A DNA stretch of 41,852 bases from Hyphochytrium catenoides (taxonomy: Eukaryota; Protista; Hyphochytriomycota). The position numbers and the translations under genes were made by a program. Numbering within the stretch: the first letter of the stretch is position 1; every line of letters starts with the position of its first letter. The notes beneath the pieces are model-generated. The model searched no databases. It was not told where the DNA came from and worked only from the letters and a program-made list of their open reading frames with translations. The stretch spans positions 1-41,852 of the forward strand of contig FLMG01003259.1 in the NCBI GenBank assembly GCA_900088475.1. Direction: 5' to 3'. Below, in pieces: positions 708-37,805 of the stretch.

Positions 708-3461
708 TTACGCTACATACACATAGGACTGCACCTGTCCATCTACCCGCTGGATGTACTCCTTGTCTATCAAGATCTCTATGTTCTGCTTGATCTGCTG
801 GACAGATGGCTTGAACATCCTGGAGAGCTGGTTGATGATCTCTGTCACTAGCTGGTTGTGGTCCAAGGCCTTCTTCGTCTTCATGATCCGGACGGCCGCA
901 GCTTGCACAACCATCCTTCTGTCCTCAACTATCTCCTTCTTTGCCACGGCGACCTCCTTAACAGCGTCTGCTGGTGCAGCGGCGGTATGGAGCTTCAGTC
1001 TGGTGCGCTTATTGGAGAAAGAGAAGTTCAGAACGATTTCTGTCTCTCCTGTCATGTTGGACGCATTCTCCTCAGATGCACGGCAGACAAGGACGCCAGC
1101 TCTGAGAATGGGCTCAATGTGCGCCCGAAGTTCTTCCATGCTGAGCCCTAGGCTCCTGCAAATATCCTGAGCAAGGATGCTGTCTAGATCATTAAAGAGT
1201 AGAAGGATCGCCATCTGATAGGTAGAGACTTGAAGCTCATACTTGCTGCTAAAGCAGTTGGCCCGTAGGTCGCCTCTGGATTGCTGATAGAGCCAGTAGA
1301 GCTTGCTACCTGTGTGCTTAGAGTGATAGAACTTCTGGAAGCTCTCCATGCAAGGCTCTAATTCCCTTGGAGTGCGGAAAGCAGCGGTGGCGGAGGGCGT
1401 CTGAATGGGCCAAGATCCTGCTGTTAGCACTAAGACATCAAAGTCGACGTCTCCTAACAGCTCATGCTCATACTCAAGGACAGAGCCTTGTCTTGGCCTT
1501 GGACTCCTGTTGGCTGCGTCCTCCTCGAGGGGCTTCCCTCCATTCCTGACCCATTTCCTGAAGTTGAGGCTAAGATCTGAGCTGAGGCGCTTGTCATTGA
1601 ACATCCGGTTCAGCTTGGAGGCATACTCTATGCCGCAGGTGTCTCTCAGGCTCCTCAACATAAGTTCTTCCATATCATCAGAGATGGACGTGTTCTCAAT
1701 GATTCTCTTGGCATAGAACTTGGAATAGAAGTGCTTGAAAAAGTCTTTGTCATCCAGAAAGCGGAAGATTGTTGCCACGCCTTCAATCTGAGCCTCTATG
1801 ACCGCCTCGTCCTTTGCATGGCGGTGGTGCCGCGGCGTCGTGTCTCCGCTCCCAGCCGCTCCACTCTTATCCAGAAGGCTGTGAGAATAGCGTGCTAGAA
1901 GCTCTGGTGTCCTGCTTCTCATGTTGACAAAGGTCCTGCAGGCTAGGTCGAAGGCTTGTCGGAATAGCGGATGCGTACCAAAGGTGCTGGAGATAAGATC
2001 GTTGAACTGTCCATATAACTTTAGGAGTGCTTCCATGAAAGCTGCAGGCTCCTTGGCAGCATCCGCTTCAGGATATTCATTGATCACAGCAGTTCCTTTG
2101 CTCTCAATAAACTTTTTGACAATGTTCTTCAAAGCGGCAAGACCAATCTTCTCGTCTCTCAGAGAGAGGAGACGGAAGAGGCGCTTGAGATCATCATTCC
2201 TTCCTTCTTCAAGATACACTTCTGCGTCTCCACAGAGCCTCTCTACGTGATCCTCTATCAGCACTCTCTCGCATTCTTGCCTGAGCTTTTTGAGAGTCGG
2301 CTTCGGCAGACACTTTTCGAAGCGCTTCTCATCTGCAGAGAGAATCTCTTCAACTTCACGAAGATAATGTGCGATGGTAAGACGCTGGAGGCTGTCCGCT
2401 GATCGGCGGGAGTAGAACTCGCCTGTAGCCTTGAGGAGGCTCTCTTCGATCTCCTCTCTGTATAGCTTCATCGGGTCGTGCTTGTTGAGTCCCAGCTTAA
2501 GATAAGAGTCCACGATGCTGTAAGCCAGCGAACTCTGCTCAAACGTCTCTTCTTCAGACTCTCTCGCCTTCTTTATGAGCCCAATGAGTCCAGATTTTAC
2601 TCGTCCACGAAGCTTTGTGAAGACGACGTCGCGCCACACGTGCAGAGCGAGCTCTGTGACTGGATAAACACCTGGGATGGGCGTCTGTCCGTTCTCTGCG
2701 TGTGATGTTCTGATCCAATACCGGTTTAGATAGGAGAAAAGTTCTCCGCCATACTTCATGCCTGCCGAAATGTCATATACGGAGAAGGAGTCGTCCAACT
2801 GTTAGAATTGACGTCCCATTAGAGTGAGCCACGAAAGCGAAGAGACAGCGAGGAAGAAAGACGTATCGATAGAAGAGGAGACAGGACAGAGAAAGAGGCA
2901 GTACGGAGCGAGCAAGTGCCAGAGAAAGAGAGCAAGCGAGAGAGAAGGAGAGCACCCAGCGGGGGAGAGCTCGCAAGCGAGACAAACACAGCAAAAGAGA
3001 GAGAGGAGGAGAAAAGAAGAGAGAGACCAGGCAGATGAGGGAGCCTTGGGGGGCGCGAACGACGAAAGAGAGAGATGTCTGTCGATGATCGTGAGAGCGA
3101 GAGTGAGAGAGAGAAAGGTAGAAGTGGCCAAACAGAAGCACAAGCAACGGGTCCCACCTGTGAAGTAATTGGAGAATGCGGAGGCATAATGTATAAGCAG
3201 ATCGCCCTCAGAGGGCACAACCCAGAGCTGATCTCTCAATCTCCCGCAGTACTTCTCAAGCATCGCCTTGAGACGGAAGTAGAGCTGCTCAGACTGCGGG
3301 TTGGAGGCATTGGTACAGATCTTATACACGGCAGTATAGTGGTGCATCCACTCATCGTTCGTCAGCCCGCGGCCAATATCGCTGATCAATGGGAGAAGAG
3401 CTCTCTCTAGATCGGCCCACGCCGTCTCAAAGTTCACGGGTTTGCTGTTTAGAAGAGGCAT
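708..3461 (-). CDS. Cullin (CUL1/CUL2-like), 2 exons (3461-3158, 2761-708)
   Basis: N-terminal cullin repeat (FETAWADL...WMHHYTAVYKICT) joins in frame over intron 3157-2762 (GTGGG...TTCTAAC...GCAG) to YLNRYW. Also present: PELLARYSHSLL, DKDFFKHFYSKFYAKR, VLTAGSWP and the neddylation motif AVRIMK...IEILIDKEYIQR. Confidence 0.93.
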
Positions 3462-11010: not shown

Positions 11011-11949
11011 TCAGGAAGCGGCGCCTGGGTGGAGACTGTTGGTAGCAATAAGAGCAGAGGAAGGAATGTACGCCACTGTGGCCTTGCTGTTAAGGCTAGC
11101 CAGCGCCTCTTGTTGCTGTCTGCTGGACATATAGCCCGAGAGAAGAGTTAGCGCTGTCTCTGGCGGCATCTTGTCCTTCATTTTCTCCACCATGGATTGC
11201 AGGCTGTCAATTAGTGCTTGATTCCTGGTACTCTCTATCTGAGAACGCGTCTGCGCCTCCTGCAGGAGCTTCCGTTGCTGAGCTTCATGCTCCATTGCTT
11301 CGAGCTCTAGCTGAGTCTTCTTCAGCTGCTTCTGCAGCTCGGCTCGCAGCAGAGCCTCCTGTCGCTCATATTCAAGCTTAGACTTGGCCAGTTTACTTCG
11401 CGCCTCTTCCTCCACGATACTCTGCGCAGCTTTATCCAGAGAAGCAGGGAAGGCAATCTTCTCCATTTTAAGCGCTGAGATCTTGATGCCTAATCGCCCC
11501 ATCTCCTTGTTAAGATCCTCTAGAGTCTGTTCGATAACTTCAGGAAGGCGGATGCGAACATCTTCAGTGCTAAAGTTCCTGGACTTAGTGCCCAGAAGGT
11601 CGCACAGCGTGTGCTTGAGGATCTCTAGAGAGTTGGACGAAGCCATCGTAAACCTCTTCCCGTCCGTGACATAGTAATGCACGATGAGATCAACCAGAAT
11701 GGTCAGATTCTCCCTTGTTACCAAGCGAAAAGCCGGAACGTCATAGACAGACAAGGCTAGAGAGAAGATCTCCACGGTGTCAATCAAGGGAAAGCTCCAG
11801 AAGAGAGCTCTGCGGTCAATGACAGAGACAGAGCCAAAGCGCGTGACCACTGCGGCTTGGAAAGGCTTTAGCACGACCAAGCGGATGATGAAGACTCTCA
11901 GCATAAGTAAGGAGATGGGAAGGATGAGGAGAGAAAGGAAGAGACTCAT
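11011..11949 (-). CDS. SPFH/band-7 (stomatin/prohibitin-like) membrane protein, intronless, 312 aa
   Basis: N-terminal hydrophobic anchor, AAVVTRFG, FPLID, LVTRENLTILVDLIVHYYVTD, LGIKISALKMEKIAFP, then a coiled coil. Confidence 0.85.
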   Translation of the reverse strand: MSLFLSLLILPISLLMLRVFIIRLVVLKPFQAAVVTRFGSVSVIDRRALFWSFPLIDTVEIFSLALSVYDVPAFRLVTRENLTILVDLIVHYYVTDGKRFTMASSNSLEILKHTLCDLLGTKSRNFSTEDVRIRLPEVIEQTLEDLNKEMGRLGIKISALKMEKIAFPASLDKAAQSIVEEEARSKLAKSKLEYERQEALLRAELQKQLKKTQLELEAMEHEAQQRKLLQEAQTRSQIESTRNQALIDSLQSMVEKMKDKMPPETALTLLSGYMSSRQQQEALASLNSKATVAYIPSSALIATNSLHPGAAS

Positions 11950-20800: not shown

Positions 20801-23800
20801 TGTCTCAACAGTTCATTGTTGTGATGGGAGAGCTCGTAAGCCTGTTTCTCAACGATTGCCCTTTCTCTCCAGAGTGCTTCCTCCTCCGCTCTTGATCTCC
20901 AGACGTTTTCTTTCTCTGTGGTGAGCCTTTTCTGGACGTCTCCCAGTTCTTTCTCAAGAGCCTGAACACGTGTTGACAATGCCTCAGCTTCCTCTTCTTT
21001 CAGCCTTTGCTTTCCCTGCATCTCTTTCTTTAGCATTTCACTTCTTGCTAACTCATCTCTAAGCCTCCTGCTCTCTTTCTTCCATCGCTCTACTATGCAG
21101 TTTATGAGCAAGAGAAGAGTGAGTGGCAGTGATTACGCTGCACACGTAGACACACNNNNNNNNNNAGATGTCGGAATTGCGACGCATGGCAACAGTAAGA
21201 AGTCCAAATGAAAATAGCTCATTCGTGCCAAGAGACAGAAGAGAAATGCATGTTGCCAGATGCGCTAGGGAGAACGTGCAGCGGGAGGCAAATGGATCAA
21301 GGATGCCAAAGTAGATAGAGAGGCTGAGAAGGGATGATGGGGTTGCACTGCATCACCTGTTTCATCACTCTCTCTGTTGCGTCCTTCTCCTGCTCCGTCC
21401 CTCAGTCTGGACGCTGCCAGTTGGCGCAGGCTGCTCAACTCCAGCTGGCAGATGGCAAGCTCAGACTGCACAGATAAGAATCAGTTTCAAGTCAGGGTCA
21501 AGACTAAAGCTGAGAGAAAGACGACGAGAGACTCACCTTCAGTTCCACTTCCGCCTCTATGAACTGTTGGATCCTCTTCTCCTTTATAAAGAGCATCTCG
21601 GATAAACTTTCTATCTCTCTTTTCGTGGCGGTCGCGAGGTCTTCGATCTCGTCTCTATCTTCTGAGTGTCCTTCCCTCTCGACGGCTAAAAGTCCTTCTC
21701 GAACTGCTTTTATAACGCTCTGAGCATCACTCAAGCCTGCAAGCAACATGGAATATGGTTCTCCTCTTGCGCTTTCCCTTTCTTCGCTCAAGAGAGCCGA
21801 TGGGAACGAAGAATCGTACAGGTGCTCGTCTCCTCTAGTGTCCTCTTCTGCCAGGGTGGATTGAGCGAGCTCCGTTGAGAAGTACAGAGAAGGCTCACCG
21901 CCATACCCTGCGTCACCTCTCTCTTCATCGAGGTGCACTGCTCTATCCTTTCGCGGAGTGTTGTCTCCTCGGACTGCTTCATGCCATCTGCGTAACTGCT
22001 GAAGAAGAAGTAACAGGTCTCCCTTGAGCTCCGCCAAGGCTTTCATAACTGCTGCAGAAGCAAGAGCTATTTGTTGTTGGACGATAGTTCCTTCACTGGC
22101 TCCTACGCCAGGAGGAATGCCCGTTCTAATCTCTGCCCTTGACTCTTCATGGGTTTCTTGACGGCTATCCAACTGAGTTGGCTGCGTCGACTGTCTTTCT
22201 GACGCAGGCTCTTTAGCTTGACCTAGCTCTTCCTGCATATCTGACGGCACTCCATCTGCGCCTTCAGCTGTTGAAGTGTTTCCACCAATGGCGGCCTCTG
22301 GGTTCAGCGCAAGGCCTATGCACTCTCTGCTTTCCTCGTATGGCTCTTCTCGGCACTTCTCTACCTCTGCGTGCGGCTCTTCTCGGCGCTTGTCTACCTT
22401 TGCCTGACTGATACCGATACGCCTCTCAGGAAACAGGATACTCTCTGTGTCAGATTTGGTGCTAGGCCGAAGCTGAGGGGCTAATTGAACATCCTTCCGC
22501 TCACTGGTGTCCGATGACATGGAAACTGTTCCCGGTTGTGAAGGGCGCTTCTTAGCCTTTAGCTCTTCCTTTAGGGCGGAAAGCTCGCCCTCTAACTTCT
22601 GAACCTCTTCTTGTCTTCTCAGTTGTAGAGCCTGAAGCTCCTGCTGCATAGCTTTCTGAGCAGTAAAGAAGGAACTCTCTCGCTCTTGTAAGTAAGCGCT
22701 TTCCTCCTTGCTCTCCGCTCTTAAAAGTTCTATTTCCTGAGTTCGGGCAGCGAGAGCTTTGAGGGTATGCGCTTCACGTTCGGTGTGCCTCTTTCTTTCT
22801 TCCTCAAGCTGTCGCTCTATCAACGCAAATGATTGTTGCCAGTCGTGCTGTTCTGAGAGTCCTTGACTGTTGTGTGGGCTTTCCCTTTCGTCTCGCCCTA
22901 AGGCCGCTTGCTGTACCTCTCCTTTTAGTTCAGCTCCATCCGTTCTCCCCTCATCTTTCTGAGAATGCCTATTCAATGCCTCCTGCAGAGCTCTCTTGAG
23001 GCCAACGCACTCAGATCGAAGTCTCTCAATCTCAGTGAGGAGCTCCCCTTCTTCTCTCGTTTGATCCTTGTGTTGAGCCTCTGCCAAGAGATCTCCGCCA
23101 CCTCCTCCATATTCTTCTATCTCTGCTCCGTAACTTTCTGTCACTTGCTCTGCCCTATCGCTGCGCAACCCTGTCGGAGACGTCAGCCTCCTCTGCGCAG
23201 CACTTTCGTCTATCTGCGCTGTGACTCTTGCAAGCGGATGCTCCATTGACAGAGCTTCCCCCTCCGCTCTGTCCCTGGTGAGAAAAGGCTGCTCTTCCTT
23301 TATCCTCTCCGTCTCTTCTGTAGCCTTCTCCAACGTTGCTCTTTCTATTAACACTTGCGAATTTTTCAGGCTAATTATCTCGTCTTCCAAGCGTCGTATG
23401 GAGACTAAGAAGGACGCTCTCTCATCTTCCATCTGCTTTCTCAAGTTCAAAAGTTTGAAGCTATCGGCATCCCGCTCCTTTGCGGGTGAAGTATCCTCCC
23501 CTTGCTTATCATCCTCGTCAGAGAGAGGTAGTGGGGCTACACTTGTTTGTGAAACAGGAGGTGACGAGAGGGAGCGATCAAGTAACGCTTGGCGAAGCTG
23601 AGAGCACTCTGTCTGAAGTCTCAGGAGTTCCTCTTGCTGGCTGATTAGCAGGGCTTCGAGGTTGTCGCGTCCCTTTGAAGTTTGCTCTTTGGTAAATTCT
23701 GCACGGAGGTCCTCAGTGCCATCAAATCGCTCCAGCTGAGTAGCCGTCGGACTGCCACCCTCCTCCTCTTTTGCTATTATGGCTTCGCACTTCGAGGTCT

Positions 23801-26800
23801 TCTCTTCAAGTCGGTCTTCATTGTCACTCCCACCAGGGAGAGAAGATGATGGTAAGGTCGCTGAAGCAAACGTTGGACTTGGCATGGAGCTCGTGGGATC
23901 GCTCATATCCGCGCGGAGCAAGTCAAGCTCGTGCGTAAGCGAAGTAATGAGCTTCTGCTGGGCCTGCTCTCTCTCTTGTTGCTTCTGCTCCCTTTCTACC
24001 TCCCGCTCTTCAACTCTCCTGCTCTCTTCAAACTCTCTTTCCCTGCGTTCCTCTTCCTCCTGCTCCTTACGTTTGGCTTCTCTTTGATTTTTCTCTTCCT
24101 CTAATCTCGTGTTCTCAAGCTCTAATGTTCTTCTTCGCTCCTCCTCTTCTTCGTTCCTCTTTCGTTGGTGACAAATCTCGGCGTCCTTCTCCTCCAACTG
24201 TCGTTCTAAACTCTCTTTCAGGACTTTCATCCTTGAAAGATCGTCTTCCTTGTTCTTCATTGAGAGGGCAAAAGCCTTACAGCTCTTTTCCAGTCTACTC
24301 AATAGTTGCTTTTGCCCTAGTTCCGCTTCTTTTAGTAGGTGGCGCAGATGCTGTAGCTCCTTCTCCCGCTTGATTTGTTCTCTCTCTGTCTCTTCCTCTG
24401 CTATTCTTCTCTGCTCACTTTGTTCTTCAGCCTTCTGCTCGAGCTCTTCCTCACGTTGTCTTCGCCGCTGAATCTCTCTTGTTAGCTTCCGTTCCTTCTT
24501 CTCCTAGAAAAATAGAAGAGTTTTAGCATCCAAGTCATATTCACTAGAGGCCAACGGGTAATACGTATAAGGCGGATACAGTCCGACGTCATTTGTCTCT
24601 TCTCTCCTCCAATCCACGCTATTTCGGCCTTTGTGACGCTTTGCATCTCTTCTCTGGTCCTTGGGTAACTAACTCTCTTCTGGATTCGCTGCTGAAATGC
24701 ACCTGAGACATACCTGATCTTTCTCGCGTTTAGCTAAAAGGTCCCGAAGGTTGCTCAGGTCTTCGTCTATAGAGTCGTCGGCTGGTATTGAGAGTGATGC
24801 TTGCGTTTCGGTGGAGAGTAAAGGCCCCGATAGAGCCATATGTCTTCGAAGGTCCTCAGATTCTTTCTGAACAACGGTCAGCTCTCTTGTGCGCCCCTCA
24901 ATCTCTCTCCTCAAATGCTGCACCTCTCTCTCAATCCGGTCTGTCTGATCTCTCTCTTGTTTAGTTGATAGTTCGCGAAGGTTGTTCAGGTTCTCCTTCA
25001 CAGCTTCGTCGGCTAGTATTGAGAGTGATGCTTGAGCTTCAGTGGAGAGTAAAGGCCTCGAGAGAGTCCACCGTCTTCGAAGGTCCTCAGATTCTTTCTG
25101 CGCAACTGTTAGCTCCCTTGTGCGTCTCTCAATCTCTCTCCTCAAATGCTGCACCTCTCTTTCAATCCGTTCTGTCTGATCTCTCTCTTGTTTAGTTGAT
25201 AGTTCGCGAAGGTTGTGCAGCTCCTTCTCCACAGCTTCGTCGGCTGGTATTGAGAGTGATGCTTGCGCTTCAGTGGAGAGTAAAGGCCTCGAGAGAGTCC
25301 ACCGTCTTCGAAGGTCCTCAGATTCTTTCTGCGCAACTGTTAGCCCCCTTGTGCGTCCCTCAATCTCTCTCCTCAAATGCTGCACCTCTCTTTCAATCCG
25401 TTCTGTCTGATCTTTCTCTTGTTTAGTTGATAGTTCCCCAAGGTTGTCCAGGTCCTTCTCCACAGCTTCGTCGGTTGGTATTGAGAGTGAAGCTTGCGCA
25501 TGACTGGAGAGTAAAGGCCCCGAAAGAGTCCTTTGTCTTCGAAGGTCCCCAACTTCTTTCTGGGCGATTGTCAGCTCTCTTGTGCGTTTCTCAACCTCTC
25601 TGCTCAAGTGCTGCATCTCTTCTTCGACACGTTCTATCTGGTCCCTTTGTCTTCTAGCTAGTTCTCGAAGGTTGTGTAGCTCCTTCTCCACAATTTCGTC
25701 GTTTGATATTGTGAGTGATGCTTGCGCTTCAGTGAAAAGTAAAGGCCCAGGTGGAGCGATTGGTCCTCGAAGGTTCGCAACCTCCTTCTGGGTAACGGGT
25801 AGCTGCATCTCCGCTTGCGCTCGTTCTCTGACTAACTGCACCCCTGACGGACCTGACTGATTCCTTTTCTGAGAACCTCCAGCATCTCCTTCCATTTCCT
25901 CGGTGTTTAAATCAGGCCGTCCGGCGACCTTCTCTGCTTCTGATTCGTCTCCAGCTACGGGGCCCTCGTATATTGTTCTCTTGGTTTTAGTTTCTCGCTT
26001 GCCTGCTTCTTCTCCTGCGGCTCTCAGTTCTCTCCTCAATAGGTCCGTCAGTCTTTTGACCTCCCCCTCCAAGGCTTCTGCGTGAGCTTCCAGCGCTTGA
26101 GCCTCCTCCACACTGAGGCTGAGCGCAGTCTCAGTGGTCAAGAGAGCGGTACGGGCGGAGCTAACCTCCTTCTTCAGAGCTTCCCTATCTTTCTCACTTT
26201 GTCGGGCTAAAGAAAGAGAAGCTTCAAGCTCACTTAAGAGTCTCTGCTTCTCATCCTCCGCTTCTCGAAGTAAGGACACATAGGATGAATTTTCCACTTT
26301 GAGGCGATGGATCTCGTTCTCGATGAGTTGGGCATGTAAGGAGGCCGAAGAGAGATTCTGACGTAAGGTCTCCAGTTCTCTTTTGTGCTGCTCTCCTACC
26401 GCTAGAGCGGAAGACAGCTCAATCTCCAGGCTCTGGATCTTTCTATCGTTCTCATCTAGCGATGGATGTGGGACCGGCTTCTTCGGTAGTTCTCCTGTAG
26501 CCGTGTCAATCTCCTTTGACAAGTTTGATAGCGAAGATGGCGTTCTGGAGACTGACGCCTCTCTACCTACTCTTTCAATGCTGCCCGATCCTATGCTCTT
26601 TGATGAGACAGAGAGACCCTGCTGAGGTAGACTGCTGTCTCCATTCTTTTCTTTGTCGCTTCTGTCTTTCTCCGCCTTCAATTCACCCACTTTCTCTGCG
26701 AGGTCGCTATCTCTGCCTCGGAGTTCCAGGAGGCGCCTAAGAGCACGAAGCTCATTTGTCCAGATTTTCAGAAGCCTCTTGTGCTTATTCTCCACTTTGT

Positions 26801-29800
26801 TGAGCGTATCCAGACGATGCAAGAAGATCTGTTTCTCCTTCATCTCTGCAGCCGCTGGCTTAGTATTGTCTCCTTTTTCGGCTGTCTCTGTATGAACTCT
26901 TTCCCTTTCCAGTTGGTTAGCTTGAGTGCAGCCTTCTCTTCCTTTCGCTCTCGCTTCTTCGTTTTTCTGGTCCTCTGCCCCTATTACCTCCTGCACGAGG
27001 AGTTGTATGAGAGCTTCTACTCCTTCCCGGAGCTTTTGAGTCTGTTCTCTTACTTTCCGCACCTCTTCTTGCCCGGCGTTGTAGGACTCCTCTACTGAAG
27101 AGATTGTCTCCTTGAGCTCAAGCGCTATCTCAGGTTCACTTGCCTCCAGGAGAATGGCCGTGCTCTTCCTACTGAGTTCACCTATTTCCCCTTCGTGTTG
27201 CCGTAAGTCTTCAGCGACAAGAGACAGAGTGATCCCTCTTCTGTCGTCTCCTTGACTTTGTGCCTTCTCTTCTTCTACCGTCTGAAGCTGCGATCTTAGA
27301 GCTCTCACTTCTGCGTCGAGTCGCCGCAAAGTAGAGCTCAATCCTGCTACCACAGTCTCCAGAGCTCCCAAGAATCTCTTTTCCGCCTCTTGTTTCTCTT
27401 TGATATGCTCTGTCCTCGGCCTTCCTACGGCTATTCCCCCTTCGTGTGCGAGGACGAGAGAAGAGGAAGAAGAGAGCGCCATTTGCCTGTTGCTCAGTTC
27501 AGTCCGCAGCAAGTGGACCTCCTCGTCCTGATCCCTTAGCCTTTTTATGAGGTTTCCTTGTTGTTTCTGCAAGCGAGTGATCTCAAGCTCCTTCTGTTCC
27601 AGCAGGGAAGAGGTCAGCCGCGTCGAATGCCGTGCACGCTGTAATCTCTCGCATTCCTTCTGCAAAACCAAGAGCTCCTCTTTTTGTTCGTTCTCAATAC
27701 TCCGGAGGCGGAAGACCTCCCCACTTAGCTTCTTGATGGACAGATCCAGTGAGAGATTGAGAGTCTCAAGCTCCCTCTCTCTCTCCTGGCTCTCCAGTTC
27801 TCTTTGGTCATATTGGTGTTGAAGAATACTGAGCCTATCTCCCTGAAGCTTCATAGTTTGCAAGTCAACATCACCACTGTTAGTCTCCTGAGACCGTTCT
27901 ACCTTTCTGCCTCTTAGCTCAACCTCCAATTCTTTCTCTCTCCGCAAGTACTCATTCTCTTTTATCTCCCAGGCCTTTTTATCTCTCCTCATAGCCTGAA
28001 GCTCGTTAGTGAGGCGAAGTAGGGAAGCTCGGTAGGACTGCAATTGATCTCGAACTTCCTCCTTATCTTGACCTTCTGCAAACTCTTCTTCCTCTCTCAA
28101 CACTCTCTCTTCTAGCCCACTTTCCATTGCGTTTCGCTTGATTGGAAAAGTGGCACGACCAGTTCGGACGCCGGAAGAGGAGATGCCTGAGGAACGTTCC
28201 AATTCCGTGGAGACTGGGTAATCCTCTGTCATTTGGCCTATAGCTCTGCCAACAGCCTGGGCATGACCATGAGAACGAAGGATGGGCGAGAGTCGTGAGA
28301 TGTAGAGAGGGCCATCCTCTCCAATTGTCGCTGACAGGTGATCCCGAGTCTCGGCCTTGCAATGTAAACGGGACAGCTCAGCTTCCAAGTTCTTGATAGA
28401 GGCAAGCAGCAAAGCATTCTCTTTCCTTAGTTCTTTCTCTACCTTTCGATGCCGTTCTTCCTCCTTTCTCATCTCTTCTCTTGCTGCGTTCTCGCGGCGT
28501 CTCTTCCCTCTATCTTTCTCTTGTTTTTCTTTGAGAAATGAAGACAGATCCCTGCAGAGCCGCTCAGCTTCAACCCTGAGGTCCACGGTAAGGTCACCAG
28601 CTTGTATCTCCCTTCCTTCAGCGATGGTGTCATAACCCGTCTCTGTGGACGGGGATAAAGACGAAACTGAAGTGTGGAACGGTTGGGACGGAAGCGTGCC
28701 TTCTGCCTCTTCAGCCTCAGAAGACAAAAGGAGAGAAAGCAGAGTTCCCAGGTGCCGCAAGGAAAAGCCTATCTGTTCGATCTCTCCCCTTAATCTCACA
28801 GCTTCATCTGCCTCCTCGAGAGCGATAAAAGCTGGCGTTAGAGGCTCTGGTCCCTGCTTCACTGGTTGCCGTTGGGAAGAAGCTTGTTGGTCTTTCTCCT
28901 TTTCACCGCGAGAGAGTGCCACTTCGGCGTCGCGAAGCTTCTTTGATTTCTCTGAAAGCTCTGCACTTAGAGCAGTCAGCTCCTCTTCCAGAGCTCTCCT
29001 TCGTTTAACTTCCTCGTGGTAACTTAAATCTAGCTGCACTTGGACAGCCTTCTCAACGTGGCCGCCGCTTTCCGTCTTCCTAGCCATTTCCACTCTTTGC
29101 AGTTCTTCTTTGACGCAATCCAACTCTTGAATCTTCTTTGTGAGCATGTCCTCAAGTCCCTCCATCTTCTCTTTTCTTAGCGCTATGTCCTTCGCCCTTC
29201 CTCTCTCCACTTCCAAGTCAGCTTCGAGCGCTCTGATATGAGTACGCAAAGAGCTGATGTCATGGGACAGACTGTCACACTCTTTCTCTCTCTCTAGAAG
29301 TAGCTGGCGAATCTGCAAGGTAGAAGCCTTTCGCTCTTCGCCTTCCATTCCTCCTCCACTTTCTCTCTCTTCTTGCTCTTGCGACCTCTTCCTATCTACT
29401 TCTGCTTGCAAGGTTGACAGCTGGAGTTGGAGGTCCTTGATCTGTGCCGCTTGTGCTGCCACGAGACCGCCATGCTGGGTCTGCTTACTTGCCTCTGCAT
29501 TGGCAGTAGCACTTGACGCTCTATGACAAGTGCAAGACAGTAAGCAGCGTTCTAACTGGATCACAAGCTCCCTAGCTGAAGTGAGTGACTTCGCTGCTGC
29601 AGCCACCTCTGTCGGTCCCAAAAAGGTTTGCAATAGCTTTTTCTCATTGCTCTCCCCTTCCGATTGAATTAGATCGCTTCCTCCCTCCTGCGCGGCAAGC
29701 TTCCGTGGCTGAGCACGAGTTAAAGGCAGTCTTAGACTATCCAGCAAGGTTATCACTCTCTCTGCCATTCCGGCGGGAGAGGCAGGAGAGGCTTCCTGCA

Positions 29801-31399
29801 TAGCAGTTTAAGTCAGCCCTCGTCAGGCAAAATTAGTGCTTGGGACACGGACGAGGTGAATTAAGGAACGGTCTAGTCTGTGGAATGCCTTAAAGAAGAG
29901 CCAATGTACCGAACGTGGTAAGTCCCGTTACACAGGATACGGCAGGAAACAAGGGCACATACATATATAAAGTAGGTAGAGATAGCATCACTTTATGTGT
30001 GCGTGTGAAAGAGAGAGACAGTGTATGATATCTCATTCACCTCGGCATTCTGGAAGGCAGGAGGTTCTGCTTGCGTCTGAGGTGGCGTATCAGCCTAGAA
30101 GGAGGATAAGCGTGAGAAATGATTATATCGAATTTAATGCAATGAGGGTTTATATAAGGAACACCAAGGCTGAGGCCAAAATAGCTCCGATGAGCGTAGA
30201 GTACGCTAGTGGTGAGCCAGCAGAAAGGCATCCTCAGGATAAAGATAAGGGCGAAAGGACCAAAGACCGAGCTTAAGAGGGAGCGCAGCTGAACAGGCAT
30301 CGGGAGCCAATGATGAAAAGGACGAGAAAAGGGGCCAAAACAACCTTCTGTCTGCCGTCGAGCCTGCTCTCCAGTAAGAGAATGTACTGCAAATGAGTTT
30401 CGCTCTCAGCCCTCAGGAGCTGATTGCCTGCCTCAAGTCGCTTGATCTCACTCTGCAGACATTGAACCTCTGCCTCAAGGCGTAGCTCACGACGGATTTG
30501 CCTAGAGTCTAATAAGATAAGAGTCAGAACGCCAGATGTTTGGCTTGTGCCGTTAGAGAGCGACCAAAGTCAATTAGCACCTAGATCAGCTCGATAGCTT
30601 GCGACCAGCTTCTGCTTTATCAGTTCTCTCTCTGTGCTTAACTGATTGTCTGAAAGCTGCTGAAGATCTATCTTCCTCTTGCACAGTGCAGCGATCTAAA
30701 GAGGAGAAAGAGTCTTAGTAGACACGGGTACTGTTTATTCATGAACCGGAAAAGAAGAAGGTAGAGTCAACGAGCTCAGGCGGAGCCATATGACGGGGAG
30801 ACTCTTGCATCTTGAAAGATAGAGACGAGCTTCACTACCATTCTTAATTACCCCGTCTCTGTCCTTTCGTAGCTGCCCGAACTGTCGGGAAAGATCCTGA
30901 AACTTCTCATTGGCATCATCCAAGCATCTTTTGCCTCTCGTCACGTTAACGTTGAATAGTGAGGTGACGAGATCTTGAACCAGCAGCTCTGCCGGCAGGT
31001 CCACTTTAGCCAGGTCATCCTCATCGTCTTCCGGCTGCGCTTCTTCCTGGAGTCCACGCATTTTGGATGAAGTATAGAGAAAGCCCAAAGGGACAGGAAT
31101 AAGCGACAAAAGAGGAAAAGGTGATCAGGTCCTAGTTGTTGGTCTACCTGCAGCCGTCGGATTCGGGTGCGTATGATATCAAGGACTCGCTGATCCAGCG
31201 AGCCGCCATCCGCGGCACGGAATAGATCAGTCCCCAGACTGTTGCTCCTATTCCTCAGTACGTATTTCTCAAGGTATCGGAATATCTGTAAGAGCACAGC
31301 CTCAATGGCATCCTTGGACTCAGGCTCGGCACCAAGGTCCAGGAGCTCCTCGTCCATCATCACCCTGGCTTGGCGAGGATGATCCGAGTCATTCGTCAT
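17834..31399 (-). CDS. Giant (~3,550 aa) coiled-coil protein, about 18 exons
   Basis: ORFs 31399-31148, 29795-24714 (1694 codons), 24503-21537 (989 codons) and smaller exons join through phase-compatible GT-AG introns to a TAG at 17834. One intron contains an N gap (21156-21165), and the small 3' exons are less certain. Confidence 0.7.
24714..25790 (-). repeat. Coding tandem repeat, 231-bp (77-aa) unit, about 4.7 copies
   Basis: Repeated QKESEDLRRRWTLSRPLLSTEAQASLSIPADEAVEKELHNLRELSTKQERDQTERIEREVQHLRREIE.RTRELTVA. Antisense shadow ORFs start at 24965, 25196 and 25427, confirming the 231-bp period. Confidence 0.95.
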
Positions 31400-34404: not shown

Positions 34405-35329
34405 TGTCCCGATAGCGCGCAATGCCTAGTCCACTCTCCAGACTTGGTTGGACTTTCAAGCGCACCAACCACTTTCCCTATAAGGCAAGAAACTTCGAAT
34501 GCCAAGAAAGCTCAATGTGCCTCCAGACACTGATCAGTAAGCCTGGAGTACAAGCGTATCTCAGATCAGAAACCCAGCTCATTGGCAGCTCTAGGAACTA
34601 CTGTGTAGAATCATTGCGCTCCATAATTCAGAGAGCAAGAAGGCCAGAACGCAATAAAAGAGAGCAGAACTTTGAACCTTTCCCTTGATAACTTCATTAT
34701 GCGCTACAAAGCCTATACGATTACTCAACCATCGATTGCTTCAGCTATTGATAATTTCATGACAATTCTGAAAGGTTCATGGAGTGGTCTAGATGCTGAA
34801 CATGTATAACATTGATCAGGAATAATCCTTCGAGGCTTGCGAAATACAGCGTTCATCTTTCTCTTCCCCTTTTGATGGCTGACCAATGACGGGCGTCTGC
34901 TATTATTATAATCTCTTTTCTTCCCTTTTGTTATGAGAGACAGTGAGGCCAAACGAAGGCGCTCAGCAGCTTGCTGTTCTCACCTCCGTTAATCGCTGGG
35001 ATAGGGGAGCACCATCTACGCTATTGTGTATGATGGGCTCGAGAGCCTGAGGAGAGTACAGTCCATACAATGAGCTACTTCAGATTATTGTCGTTTATAG
35101 ATGTAGTCAACCATCAATGACGGCCAACCAACGTGTTGAAGAAAAATTAGGAGCGAATTCTAACAACTTGAACAAATGTTATATGCCGGTTACTTCTCAG
35201 AAACAGTGTCTGCGAATTGCTTCATCGCATCCCTTCCAACTTGACTGCCACATGGCCAGACTCTGCTCCCGAAACCTCTTTATTGTTGCTGCATCCTCGA
35301 CACTAAATGACCCCGCTCTGTCCGCTAGT

Positions 35330-36652
35330 TTACGTGGAACGCCAGAGAGAGACCGCCGCATCCGGGGTCCAGGTAGAATTTGATGTATGAGCTTGGAGGC
35401 ACATCCAGTCCCGACCATTGTAACTAACGACATCACCGGGACTATAGGTTCCAATTGGGTCCCACTGCCTCCTGCCTGTTGTCGGCTGAGAATATTGGCC
35501 CCCATAGCCGTGATGAGGTTGTGCCTGTTGTGAGCTGCTAGCAGCTACACCCCCAGGTGGCTGCCATTGGCTTTGCTGCTGTTGTTGTTCTTGTTGCTTA
35601 CGCTTCTTCTCTTCCTCTTCCTTCTTCTTCTGGTCTTTCATGAAGTCGCTAGCCAGTACTCCGGCCCCGATAGCGGCCCCGACGCCTAACACGCTCATGC
35701 CCACGTTTGCCGCTGTGTTAATTTGCTCAAGCTGCTTCATCCGGCGGTACTGGATGTCGTTCATCTGTGTAAAGCCTTGCACTGGTGATCCGTCCATAGT
35801 ACCGCCAGTAATAGGTGGCTGAAGAGTGAGTGCAAGGTTGATTGAGCCCTGGACCTTACCCTTTCGGTTGTATAGGTCAAACCAGCCGTTCAAGTGATTG
35901 CCGGGTCGGCTGACGATTTGGTTCAGGGGGATGCAAGTAAAGCCAGAAACCTCATCCACAGCGGCATCGGAGTCAAGCACTTCAACGAAAAGATTGGTTG
36001 ACTGCAGGGAAGAGCCACCTTGGGGAAAGGATATAGCCACGGTCTGATTCCACGTGGGGTTGCTGCCTCCGTCCTTGGCCACCTTGGTCTTAGCCAAGAC
36101 GTTCTTGCCGTCAGGATTGGTCAGGAATTGGACGTAGGGATCCTGCTTACCCATAAGCTCCCTATTTTCAATGCCTCTCGCGCTAATGACCGTGATTGAT
36201 AGCTGTGATGGGACATTTCCAGCCGCAGCAGGAGGCTGAGGTGGATATGGTTGGGCATAGCCCTGCCCTGCACTCGGAGCAGGAGGAGCTGTTGGGTAGC
36301 CTGCTGAAGGCGGTGCTACCACTTGTTGTGCCGCACTGTAAGGGGCGCTGGCCATGGGCGCTCCCCCGGCAGGGTAGCCTGCTGATGCCATTGGAGCTGG
36401 AGCACCATACGCCGGTGCGCCACCCATAGGTGCTCCAGCCATAGGTGCCCCAGCCATTGGTACTCCAGCCATAGGGGCAGCGTAACCCATGGGTGCGCCT
36501 GCATACCCCGGGCCCGCGGGTGGAGCACCGTAACCTGCGACAGGGGCGCCATATCCGGCTGGAGCGCCATATCCAGCTGGAGCGCCATATCCAGCTGGTG
36601 CCCCTGCTGGCGGTGCCCCGGGATAACCATACTGACCTCTATTCGGATCCAT
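35330..36652 (-). CDS. Intronless 440-aa protein: Pro/Gly/Ala/Tyr repeats, C2 domain, Gly-zipper helix, C-terminal CBM5/12 (chitin-binding type 3)
   Basis: C2: LSITVISARGI...GKQDPYV...KTKVAKDGGSNPTWNQT...VEVLDSD...G.I.L.L. CBM: W....TY.PGDVVSYNGRDW.CLQAHTS...WTP....SLW. Confidence 0.9.
   Translation of the reverse strand: MDPNRGQYGYPGAPPAGAPAGYGAPAGYGAPAGYGAPVAGYGAPPAGPGYAGAPMGYAAPMAGVPMAGAPMAGAPMGGAPAYGAPAPMASAGYPAGGAPMASAPYSAAQQVVAPPSAGYPTAPPAPSAGQGYAQPYPPQPPAAAGNVPSQLSITVISARGIENRELMGKQDPYVQFLTNPDGKNVLAKTKVAKDGGSNPTWNQTVAISFPQGGSSLQSTNLFVEVLDSDAAVDEVSGFTCIPLNQIVSRPGNHLNGWFDLYNRKGKVQGSINLALTLQPPITGGTMDGSPVQGFTQMNDIQYRRMKQLEQINTAANVGMSVLGVGAAIGAGVLASDFMKDQKKKEEEEKKRKQQEQQQQQSQWQPPGGVAASSSQQAQPHHGYGGQYSQPTTGRRQWDPIGTYSPGDVVSYNGRDWMCLQAHTSNSTWTPDAAVSLWRST
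36415..36605 (-). repeat. Coding micro-repeats (GYGAPA x3, 18 bp; GAPMA-like, 15 bp)
   Basis: Near-identical 18-bp units (gcgccatatccagctgga) and ccagccataggtgc repeats. Confidence 0.85.
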
Positions 36653-37805
36653 GTTGAGTGGTCAAAGGCAATAGATAAAGATGCGTGGACTTCCAAACCA
36701 AACGATAAGGCGTTAAGTTAGCAAAGACTAAAGGAGTAACTTTCCGATGGCGCTTTGACAGTCAGAGACTAATCACGATGTGAGCTATGTAAGAGAGAGC
36801 ACGCAGCACGATCCGGGCCTAGAAAGATCTTCCCTCCTGCAGGAAAGAATCTTGCGATCTTGTTCTTGAGCGCTGTCTTTCTTTCTTTCTTCCCCTGTCT
36901 GGTTTCTGATTTGATGACGGTTTTTACGCGTTCATATCAGGAATAGAGAGGTAGGACAGCCCTTCTATAGCTCATAACGTCGTGCCCATTCTTAATCCCA
37001 TGATGCTGTGGATTGTGTGTGTCACACTCTCACTTTCTGGCTGTCCTTGCCTGTTCACAAGCCTCTGCCCCTTGTGCCTTTACGTAAGGCTCTGGCGGCT
37101 GGCTATCTAACACGCTGCTGACCACAATGCCTGACAAGGTCCATCATCGGGCTCACATCATCCTCCGCACCTTGCTGTCCTGACACAATGCTGGCAAGGC
37201 TCCTAGTTCCATTAGAAGCTGAATCCTTCAAGAGGTGAAGCAAGATGACACGGAAGAGGCGCATTAGTATTTATATGATAGATCTTGGAAACGATCAAGG
37301 CATGATAGAGGATTAGGGCCAAGGACCTGTCAGCATAATCTTGGGATCTGAGCTGCAGTGCTGCCCCGCTGCCAGATGGTTTTCACCCACTGTCAAAGTC
37401 ATCAATGCAGTCATAAGTCCTCAGGAATAGCTTGAAGCCTTTTCTCAATATTAACAGAATGCGTCATCATGTATCTGTTAGAAAATGAGAAGAACAGCCA
37501 GCATCTGCGTCTTGAAGAGCCTCGTCACAAGTACACGAGCCGGTCATACTGAGAGGGAGGAGTACGCCTGGTAGTAAGTTACGAAGCCAGCAATGGATCA
37601 GGTCGCAGGCCTCATCCTCCTCTTCTTCAAAGTGAGGACTGCCTTGAACTTAATCCTAAACCCTAATAACTACTGTGCGCCTACCAATGCTAACAACTCT
37701 TCACATTAGCATTAGCTGCTAGTTGACAAAGCACCACTATAGAGAGATGGACACTTCCTAAATGACCTATGCAAGGGGCTCGCTGGAGAGATATGAGCCG
37801 CTGAG

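Follow-up and report, generated by a model that had tools for sequence, protein, structure and literature searches.

On the minus strand of a 41,852-nucleotide stretch of DNA from Hyphochytrium catenoides (contig FLMG01003259.1, assembly GCA_900088475.1; the whole stretch is called the window below), a gene at positions 35330-36652 encodes a protein of 440 amino acids (aa). The protein consists of an N-terminal low-complexity repeat, a C2 domain, a glycine-zipper hydrophobic helix, a charged spacer, and a C-terminal CBM5/12-type carbohydrate-binding module (CBM). Judged from the sequences retrieved here, the combination of C2 domain, transmembrane (TM) helix, and CBM5/12 defines a conserved, uncharacterised family, and the architecture is not unique to the window. 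To this family, the window protein adds an extra N-terminal repeat and an apparently non-fungal host. We see an even chance that the protein acts as a single-pass membrane link, connecting wall chitin on the outside to Ca2+ and lipid events on the inside.

Gene model and domain organization

The coding sequence is one uninterrupted open reading frame (ORF) of 440 codons, starting at an ATG and preceded by an in-frame TGA 12 nt upstream. A Logan contig of 1566 nt, an independent assembly from public runs of the same organism, covers positions 35353-36918. Run X6, which carries a different organism label, contains a relative that is about 92% identical (about 90-94%). This relative is alignable only from 35314 to 36656, essentially the coding sequence alone, and its flanks have diverged. 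The two insertions or deletions that separate it from the window gene, a 15-nt insertion and a 36-nt duplication, both vary the length of the N-terminal repeat in frame, while of the 19 listed substitutions 17 leave the amino acid unchanged and two account for a V/I swap. Because the match is confined to the coding sequence, its length changes stay in frame, and its substitutions are mostly synonymous, the sequence comparison identifies 35330-36652 as a real gene under purifying selection, not a chance ORF. Its composition is native, with a third-position GC content (GC3) of 0.59 over aa 146-440 and a relative synonymous codon usage (RSCU) that correlates with that of neighbouring genes at r = 0.80-0.85. 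An exact look-up of the protein and of a neighbouring ORF in a collection of 15 billion proteins gave no match for either. The features of the gene are as follows, with the strand in brackets and the basis of each assignment at the end of the line.

35330..36652 (-): whole coding sequence, single exon (440 aa plus stop); ORF list, upstream in-frame stop, X6 orthologue
36218..36652 (-): aa 1-145, disordered G/Y/P/A/M low-complexity repeat (GYGAPA x3, PMAGA x4, GYP/PYPP motifs); composition, DNA repeats, model confidence
35819..36211 (-): aa 148-278, C2 domain, SRC2/ERG-like; Pfam, HMMER against synaptotagmin-1 C2A, Foldseek, structure model
35705..35767 (-): aa 296-316, basic juxtamembrane helix, family motif G.S..NE.H.KR.KS...K; conserved columns, helix in the structure model, charge
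35648..35704 (-): aa 317-335, Gly-zipper hydrophobic helix VGMSVLGVGAAIGAGVLAS, probable single transmembrane anchor; Kyte-Doolittle hydropathy, conservation, paralogues
35468..35647 (-): aa 336-395, K/E/Q-rich spacer, helical then disordered; sequence, structure model
35333..35467 (-): aa 396-440, CBM5/12 module with conserved W397, Y403, G406, YNG, CLQ.HTS, W428, P430, and LW437; Pfam, 1ed7 alignment, model confidence

Most of these parts had been recognized in an earlier note on this DNA, made from the letters alone. In a Pfam scan of the 440-aa protein, only C2 and CBM_5_12 rose above the curated cut-offs, as that note had proposed, and no catalytic domain was found. A hydropathy scan likewise agrees with the note in revealing no signal peptide, the N-terminus having no hydrophobic core. 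The repeat of about 145 residues, the hydrophobic segment VGMSVLGVGAAIGAGVLAS, the K/E/Q tract, and the two quoted C2 strings, KQDPY and LDSDAAVDE, are all present in the protein, as is the quoted string KKKEEEEKKRKQQEQQQQQ.

The C2 domain is matched by Pfam (PF00168) at aa 150-260 with 61.4 bits (cutoff 22; E 1.1e-16). In the AlphaFold2 (AF2) model it folds into a β-sandwich of eight strands, with a predicted local distance difference test score (pLDDT) of about 70-89. Its top Foldseek matches are E-Syt, the Ca-bound C2 of a Trichomonas XYPPX-protein, dysferlin C2A, and plant ERG, with target-normalised TM-scores of 0.7-0.8 against the E-Syt, dysferlin, and Trichomonas domains; the C2 domain of Munc13 is also among the structural neighbours. 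In a HMMER alignment to synaptotagmin-1 C2A, whose Ca2+ ligands we take to be D172, D178, D230, D232, and D238 (counted along the aligned sequence), the five ligand positions are all acidic in the window protein, namely E165, D171, D227, D229, and E234, with D233 adjacent to the last. Across the family, these columns are mostly D or E. From its sequence, the C2 domain looks functional, and its ligand set appears competent to bind Ca2+.

Among the matches listed from outside the family, the nearest C2 domains belong to C2 proteins with YGAP/PGY repeats from plants, green algae, an aphelid, and MMETSP protists, in which P, G, and Y together make up a fraction of 0.33-0.48. A Citrus 'SRC2 homolog' is retrieved by the family profile at E 3.5e-12, and some of the plant and streptophyte-alga proteins carry Gly-zipper hydrophobic segments very similar to that of the window protein. 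An Atlas feature search returned, in order, a Mucoromycota C2 cluster, Streptophyta C2 proteins, and SRC2 (rank 3, at a score of 0.76 that lies below the reliable range). With plant SRC2, the C2_SRC2_like group (cd04051), and related C2-P/G/Y proteins, the window protein appears to share the C2 subtype, marked by the signature GKQDPY ... GG.NP.WNQ. It also shares YGAP/GYPP-type repeats with the wider SRC2-like group, including green algal and aphelid members and the Trichomonas 'XYPPX repeat family protein' (PDB 9bkw/9zk0), and some SRC2-like proteins have a Gly-rich hydrophobic segment at their C-terminus. Identity over the C2 domain is mostly about 25-33%, one plant match reaching 41% over a shorter stretch. 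The SRC2-like label of the earlier note therefore appears justified for the parts, namely the repeats, the Gly-zipper, and probably the C2 subtype, but not for their order. The repeat comes after the C2 domain in SRC2-like proteins but before it in the window protein; and whereas SRC2-like proteins have neither a CBM nor any other domain past the hydrophobic segment, in the window protein 105 residues including the CBM follow a segment that is not terminal. SRC2 proteins are mostly plasma-membrane-associated and act in Ca2+ signalling (PMC12989361).

At the opposite end of the protein, Pfam CBM_5_12 (PF02839) matches aa 396-437 with 51.1 bits (cutoff 26.2; E 1.3e-13), covering model positions 1-43 of 44, and the module is modelled at a pLDDT of about 92. 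It aligns to the chitin-binding domain (ChBD) of Bacillus circulans ChiA1 (1ed7; E 4.5e-8, about 40% identity) and to Vibrio deacetylase CBMs. The ChiA1 motif W..Y..G..V.YNG...CLQ.HTS...W.P....LW is kept. Across 20 family sequences, all of which match CBM_5_12, W397, Y403, G406, S424, and P430 are invariant, while W428, H422, and W437 are near-invariant. The chitin-binding residues of ChiA1 are, we assume, the Trp of the GWEP motif, the HTS motif, and the first Trp/Tyr. The family-wide retention of this motif points to a maintained chitin-binding surface. The full aromatic/HTS motif is a likeness that extends to the CBM5 and CBM12 modules of chitinases and deacetylases in general (1ed7, Vibrio deacetylase 4ny2, a Serratia chitinase, and fungal GH18-CBM5). 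These enzymes are secreted, whereas the window CBM sits on a non-enzymatic protein with no signal peptide and would be delivered by a C-terminal anchor. The module had been described as bacterial in type, a label that is too narrow, as the literature also places CBM5 on fungal GH18 chitinases.

The N-terminal repeat is dominated by A, P, and G (72%; A42 P33 G29 Y14 M8 over aa 1-145) and is modelled at a pLDDT of about 40. It is encoded in part by two tandem repeats in the DNA, an 18-nt unit present 2.9 times at 36546-36598 that encodes GYGAPA, and a 15-nt unit present 4.1 times at 36414-36475 that encodes PMAGA. Within the family, only the window protein and its orthologue in X6 have the 145-aa repeat. 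Most members begin a few residues before the C2 domain; in a few Mucorales proteins, a stretch of about 45 residues rich in Q, S, T, and Y precedes it.

A conserved family and its predicted membrane topology

A word-indexed search yielded four fungal proteins in which Pfam recognizes both C2 and CBM_5_12; they come from Mycotypha africana, Gryganskiella cystojenkinii, Zychaea mexicana, and Linnemannia elongata. In their alignment, the C2 domain, a basic motif KR.KS...K, the Gly-zipper helix, a charged spacer of variable length, and the terminal CBM5/12 are collinear. A profile of this alignment, run exhaustively against 1.84 billion representative proteins, retrieved 106 proteins at E<=1e-30. 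When the best 150 were scored with block hidden Markov models (HMMs) for the three parts, at least 19 clusters carried C2, TM, and CBM in this order and a further 20 clusters carried C2 and TM only. Further named members come from Fennellomyces, Pilobolus, Sporodiniella, Apophysomyces, Calcarisporiella thermophila, and Sorochytrium milnesiophthora (Blastocladiomycota), joined by Amoeboradix gromovi (Sanchytriomycota) and several metagenome and Logan sequences. In a word-indexed profile search with a second alignment (A2), only Amoeboradix and outgroup C2 proteins were new among the matches listed. The architecture is thus present in at least 11 named species of early-diverging fungi, spanning Mucorales, Calcarisporiella, Mortierellomycota, Blastocladiomycota, and Sanchytriomycota.

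The fungal proteins, represented by Linnemannia elongata P0004, Mycotypha africana P0001, Zychaea mexicana P0003, Calcarisporiella thermophila P0016, Sorochytrium milnesiophthora P0021, and Amoeboradix gromovi P0107, are collinear with the window protein; over the region that they have in common with it, identity is 26-44% and many columns are invariant. They differ from it in the 145-aa N-terminal repeat, for which a comparable repeat is found only in the short-form relative P0045. This protein of the representative library (372 aa) has a 187-aa P/Y/G/S/Q repeat ahead of its C2 domain, which suggests that PY-type N-terminal repeats have been joined to the C2-TM core more than once.

All member annotations read 'hypothetical', 'C2 domain-containing', or 'Ca2+-dependent lipid-binding protein'. 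Full-text literature searches for C2 together with CBM5, ChtBD3, chitin-binding, or tail-anchored returned nothing relevant, and a search on 'XYPPX repeat' gave incidental mentions only. The earlier note had not recognized the architecture as described; our searches likewise brought up no paper on C2 with CBM5/12, but as a sequence design the combination is not new, being conserved in the fungal species above.

In a maximum-likelihood tree, the window protein falls into a basal polytomy with Calcarisporiella, Sorochytrium, and environmental sequences, outside a clade of Mucorales and Mortierellomycota. The short C2-TM forms nest within the long-form clades of Mucorales and Mortierellomycota and hence look like secondary losses of the CBM; their nesting led us to reject the idea that they represent the ancestral state. 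On a 43-kb IMG metagenome contig (L002:10001-11806), a tandem paralogue lies 160 nt downstream of the gene for the long-form protein P0024; it has the C2 domain only, and its hydrophobic tail is degenerate. The same contig carries Enkurin and Fy-3 genes, which are flagellar, and its source organism was therefore probably zoosporic.

The Gly-zipper helix at aa 317-335 has a mean Kyte-Doolittle value of 1.81 (19-aa window) and is the sole stretch of the protein above 1.6. Its residues G323, G329, A330, and G331 are near-invariant in the family, whose helix motif reads VG..LGG.LAVGAGLL. AF2, run on a shallow alignment, places a helix at aa 299-321 and models the TM segment and the spacer with low confidence, and its model carries no information on topology. 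In the spacer, the model shows a helix at 333-358 followed by 34 disordered residues (359-392) with a pLDDT below 50. The length of this spacer varies across the family from about 10 to about 160 aa.

Several lines of evidence bear on the orientation of this helix in a membrane. The paralogues of about 200 aa (about 20 clusters) end 6-25 aa after the same Gly-zipper helix, which is the geometry of a tail anchor. Averaged over 35 members of the family, the 15 aa that lead into the helix have a net charge of +2.8, and the flank behind it has one of -0.2. The window protein itself resembles tail-anchored and type II proteins in having no signal peptide and one hydrophobic segment, but 105 aa follow the latter. 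In tail-anchored proteins the N-terminal domain is cytosolic; C2 is a cytosolic module, and chitin is found on the exoplasmic side only. From the tail-anchored paralogues, the charge asymmetry, the missing signal peptide, and the expected sides of C2 and chitin, we infer an N-in/C-out orientation, in which the C2 domain and the repeat would be cytosolic and the CBM exoplasmic. Cysteine counts in the putative ectodomain are even in many Mucorales members, and the window protein has one; even counts as a sign of an oxidising location were dropped as too inconsistent across the family.

Proposed role and competing explanations

We postulate that the window protein is a tail-anchor-derived, single-pass protein in N-in/C-out orientation. 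On the cytosolic side would lie the 145-aa repeat and a C2 domain of probable SRC2 type, the latter held at a distance of about 40 residues from the bilayer by the basic juxtamembrane helix. The Gly-zipper helix (aa 317-335) would cross the membrane and probably self-associate. On the exoplasmic face, one CBM5/12 would be displayed on a charged stalk, helical and then disordered and about 60 aa long, which in the AF2 model could span a few nanometres past the bilayer, as far as the inner wall layer. The ligand of the CBM would be chitin, and its likeliest source is the organism's own wall, immediately outside the plasma membrane, so that wall chitin would be physically coupled to the inner leaflet by the protein. 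A rise in Ca2+, for example during wall or membrane stress, might then dock the C2 domain on acidic lipids, either in cis or on incoming vesicles, and the repeat may recruit or cluster partners.

A number of observations weigh against this proposal. A simple Hessa sum for aa 317-335 gives +2.8 kcal/mol, a marginal value for a helix that is rich in Gly and Ala. The K/E/Q-rich spacer is of a kind more typical of cytosolic proteins, and the putative ectodomain of the window protein has neither conserved glycosylation sites nor disulfide pairs. Basic residues also stand directly after the helix, and a moderately hydrophobic tail anchor with such residues behind it can target mitochondria or peroxisomes. 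Furthermore, the public run listing has no RNA run on record for the organism, and the two short near-identical contigs in runs X5 ('RNA?') and X7 ('?') are too weak to count as expression.

Some of these points are shared with the model of the earlier note, which saw a wholly cytosolic, peripheral protein of galectin-3-like design. Its hydrophobic segment would serve as an oligomerisation or monotopic element, its CBM would sense chitin or glycans exposed at damaged food vacuoles or phagosomes, and the C2 domain and P/G/Y repeat would bring Ca2+-dependent membrane binding and repair factors. The missing signal peptide, the marginal hydrophobicity of the helix, the cytosol-like spacer, and the lack of disulfide pairs and conserved sequons in the window protein fit such a model, as does the repeat, which resembles the N-termini of annexin A7/A11 and galectin-3 as we understand them. 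We nevertheless regard it as very unlikely. The model requires the CBM and the C2 domain to lie side by side in the cytosol, yet a helix conserved with its flanking charges in more than 35 sequences, and used as a tail anchor in the short paralogues, separates the two domains and, together with the charge asymmetry, would put them on opposite sides of a membrane. Moreover, the family is well represented in Mucorales, which are osmotrophs and lack food vacuoles, and is abundant in non-phagotrophic Mortierellomycota as well, so that sensing at food vacuoles cannot be its general function, and the repeat is missing from most members. Quite improbable, in our estimate, is a reading in which the CBM5/12 has been repurposed to bind chitosan, cellulose, another β-glucan of a stramenopile wall, or a protein, or in which the protein is a mitochondrial or peroxisomal tail-anchored protein unrelated to chitin. 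PDB matches show some CBM5/12-type modules on non-chitinase enzymes, for example an intradiol dioxygenase and DUF3472 proteins, and a moderately hydrophobic TM segment with K/R at once after it is a pattern that we associate with outer-mitochondrial and peroxisomal proteins. The residues that we take to bind chitin in ChiA1 are, however, conserved across the family, and tail anchors inserted post-translationally into organelles do not typically carry a C-terminal domain of 100-200 aa.

A further alternative keeps the N-in/C-out orientation but places the protein in the membrane of the endoplasmic reticulum (ER), the Golgi, a secretory (chitosome-like) vesicle, or the vacuole. A luminal CBM would then hold chitin or chito-oligomer cargo or mark wall-bound vesicles, and the C2 domain would act as in synaptotagmin or E-Syt, in Ca2+-triggered docking and fusion or in ER-plasma membrane tethering. 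A tail-anchor-like geometry delivers a protein to the ER first, the structural neighbours E-Syt, dysferlin, and Munc13 act in tethering, fusion, and repair, and the TM helix is short (19 aa). Against this stand the absence of a retention motif and the doubtful luminal ligand, as chitin is, to our understanding, polymerised at the plasma membrane and extruded outward. We consider this placement unlikely, and if the protein cycles to the surface, it would be compatible with the plasma-membrane link that we favour.

For such a plasma-membrane link, known systems offer partial parallels. The fungal wall sensors Wsc1 and Mid2, as we understand them, combine a wall- or glycan-binding ectodomain on a stalk with one TM helix and a cytosolic signalling part. 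This is a functional analogy only, with no sequence relationship; they are type I proteins with a Ser/Thr-rich stalk, whereas the window protein would be type II with a charged stalk. Among membrane-repair C2 proteins (dysferlin, synaptotagmin VII, and E-Syt/tricalbins), the resemblance lies in the C2 fold, that of the window protein being nearest to Ca2+-dependent tether and repair domains. Those proteins have several C2 domains, whereas the window protein has one.

If the proposed topology is correct, the window protein would form a one-protein bridge from wall chitin to cytosolic Ca2+ and lipid signalling. To our knowledge, a wall sensor or anchor of this type has no description in fungi. 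Family members occur in Mortierellomycota, zoosporic lineages, and Mucorales, the last with genera that cause disease in humans, such as Apophysomyces; the wall-integrity machinery of all these groups is, as far as we know, poorly characterised and may differ from the yeast Wsc/Mid2 paradigm. The family also appears to tie the plant SRC2 class to a wider, ancient group of C2 proteins with repeats and Gly-zipper anchors. More tentatively, and as a possibility that we would not yet call probable, the family may represent an ancient class of wall-cytosol links in zoosporic and zygomycete fungi. In these, the CBM5/12 on nascent chitin and the Ca2+-sensing C2 domain, here with a condensate-prone repeat, would couple wall attachment or strain to docking, repair, or exocytosis, and the class would be shared with a chitin-making, stramenopile-like protist by old horizontal transfer.

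Host context and neighbouring genes

Two neighbouring ORFs in the window carry recognizable domains:

708-2798 (-): cullin ORF of 696 aa (Cullin and Nedd8 domains); closest named relatives are Saprolegnian oomycete cullins
11011-11949 (-): Band 7/SPFH ORF

The cullin is 39-42% identical to cullin-5-like proteins of Thraustotheca and Aphanomyces, the closest among the named matches, and by such sequence relationships the host genome looks stramenopile-like. Both ORFs are useful markers for the placement of the organism. A recent transfer or a contamination as the source of the gene at 35330-36652 was rejected on its native composition and codon usage and the eukaryotic genes that flank it. An old transfer between fungi and the host lineage, in either direction, is possible. 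With a member in an apparently non-fungal producer of chitin, the family offers a case in which to test whether fungi and fungus-like protists have shared genes.

Elsewhere in the window, two ORFs of 932 and 1710 aa (21504-24302 and 24669-29801, both on the minus strand) are rich in E, L, R, and S and coiled-coil-like, and Pfam gave no match on either. They coincide with strongly negative AT and GC skew at 22-29 kb, and could be parts of one giant coiled-coil gene. In the 3' flank of the gene for the C2-CBM protein (35000-35256), run X1 contains two contigs, one identical to the window and the other with 15 differences over 257 nt, which points to two haplotypes, or else to heterozygosity or polymorphism in the source.

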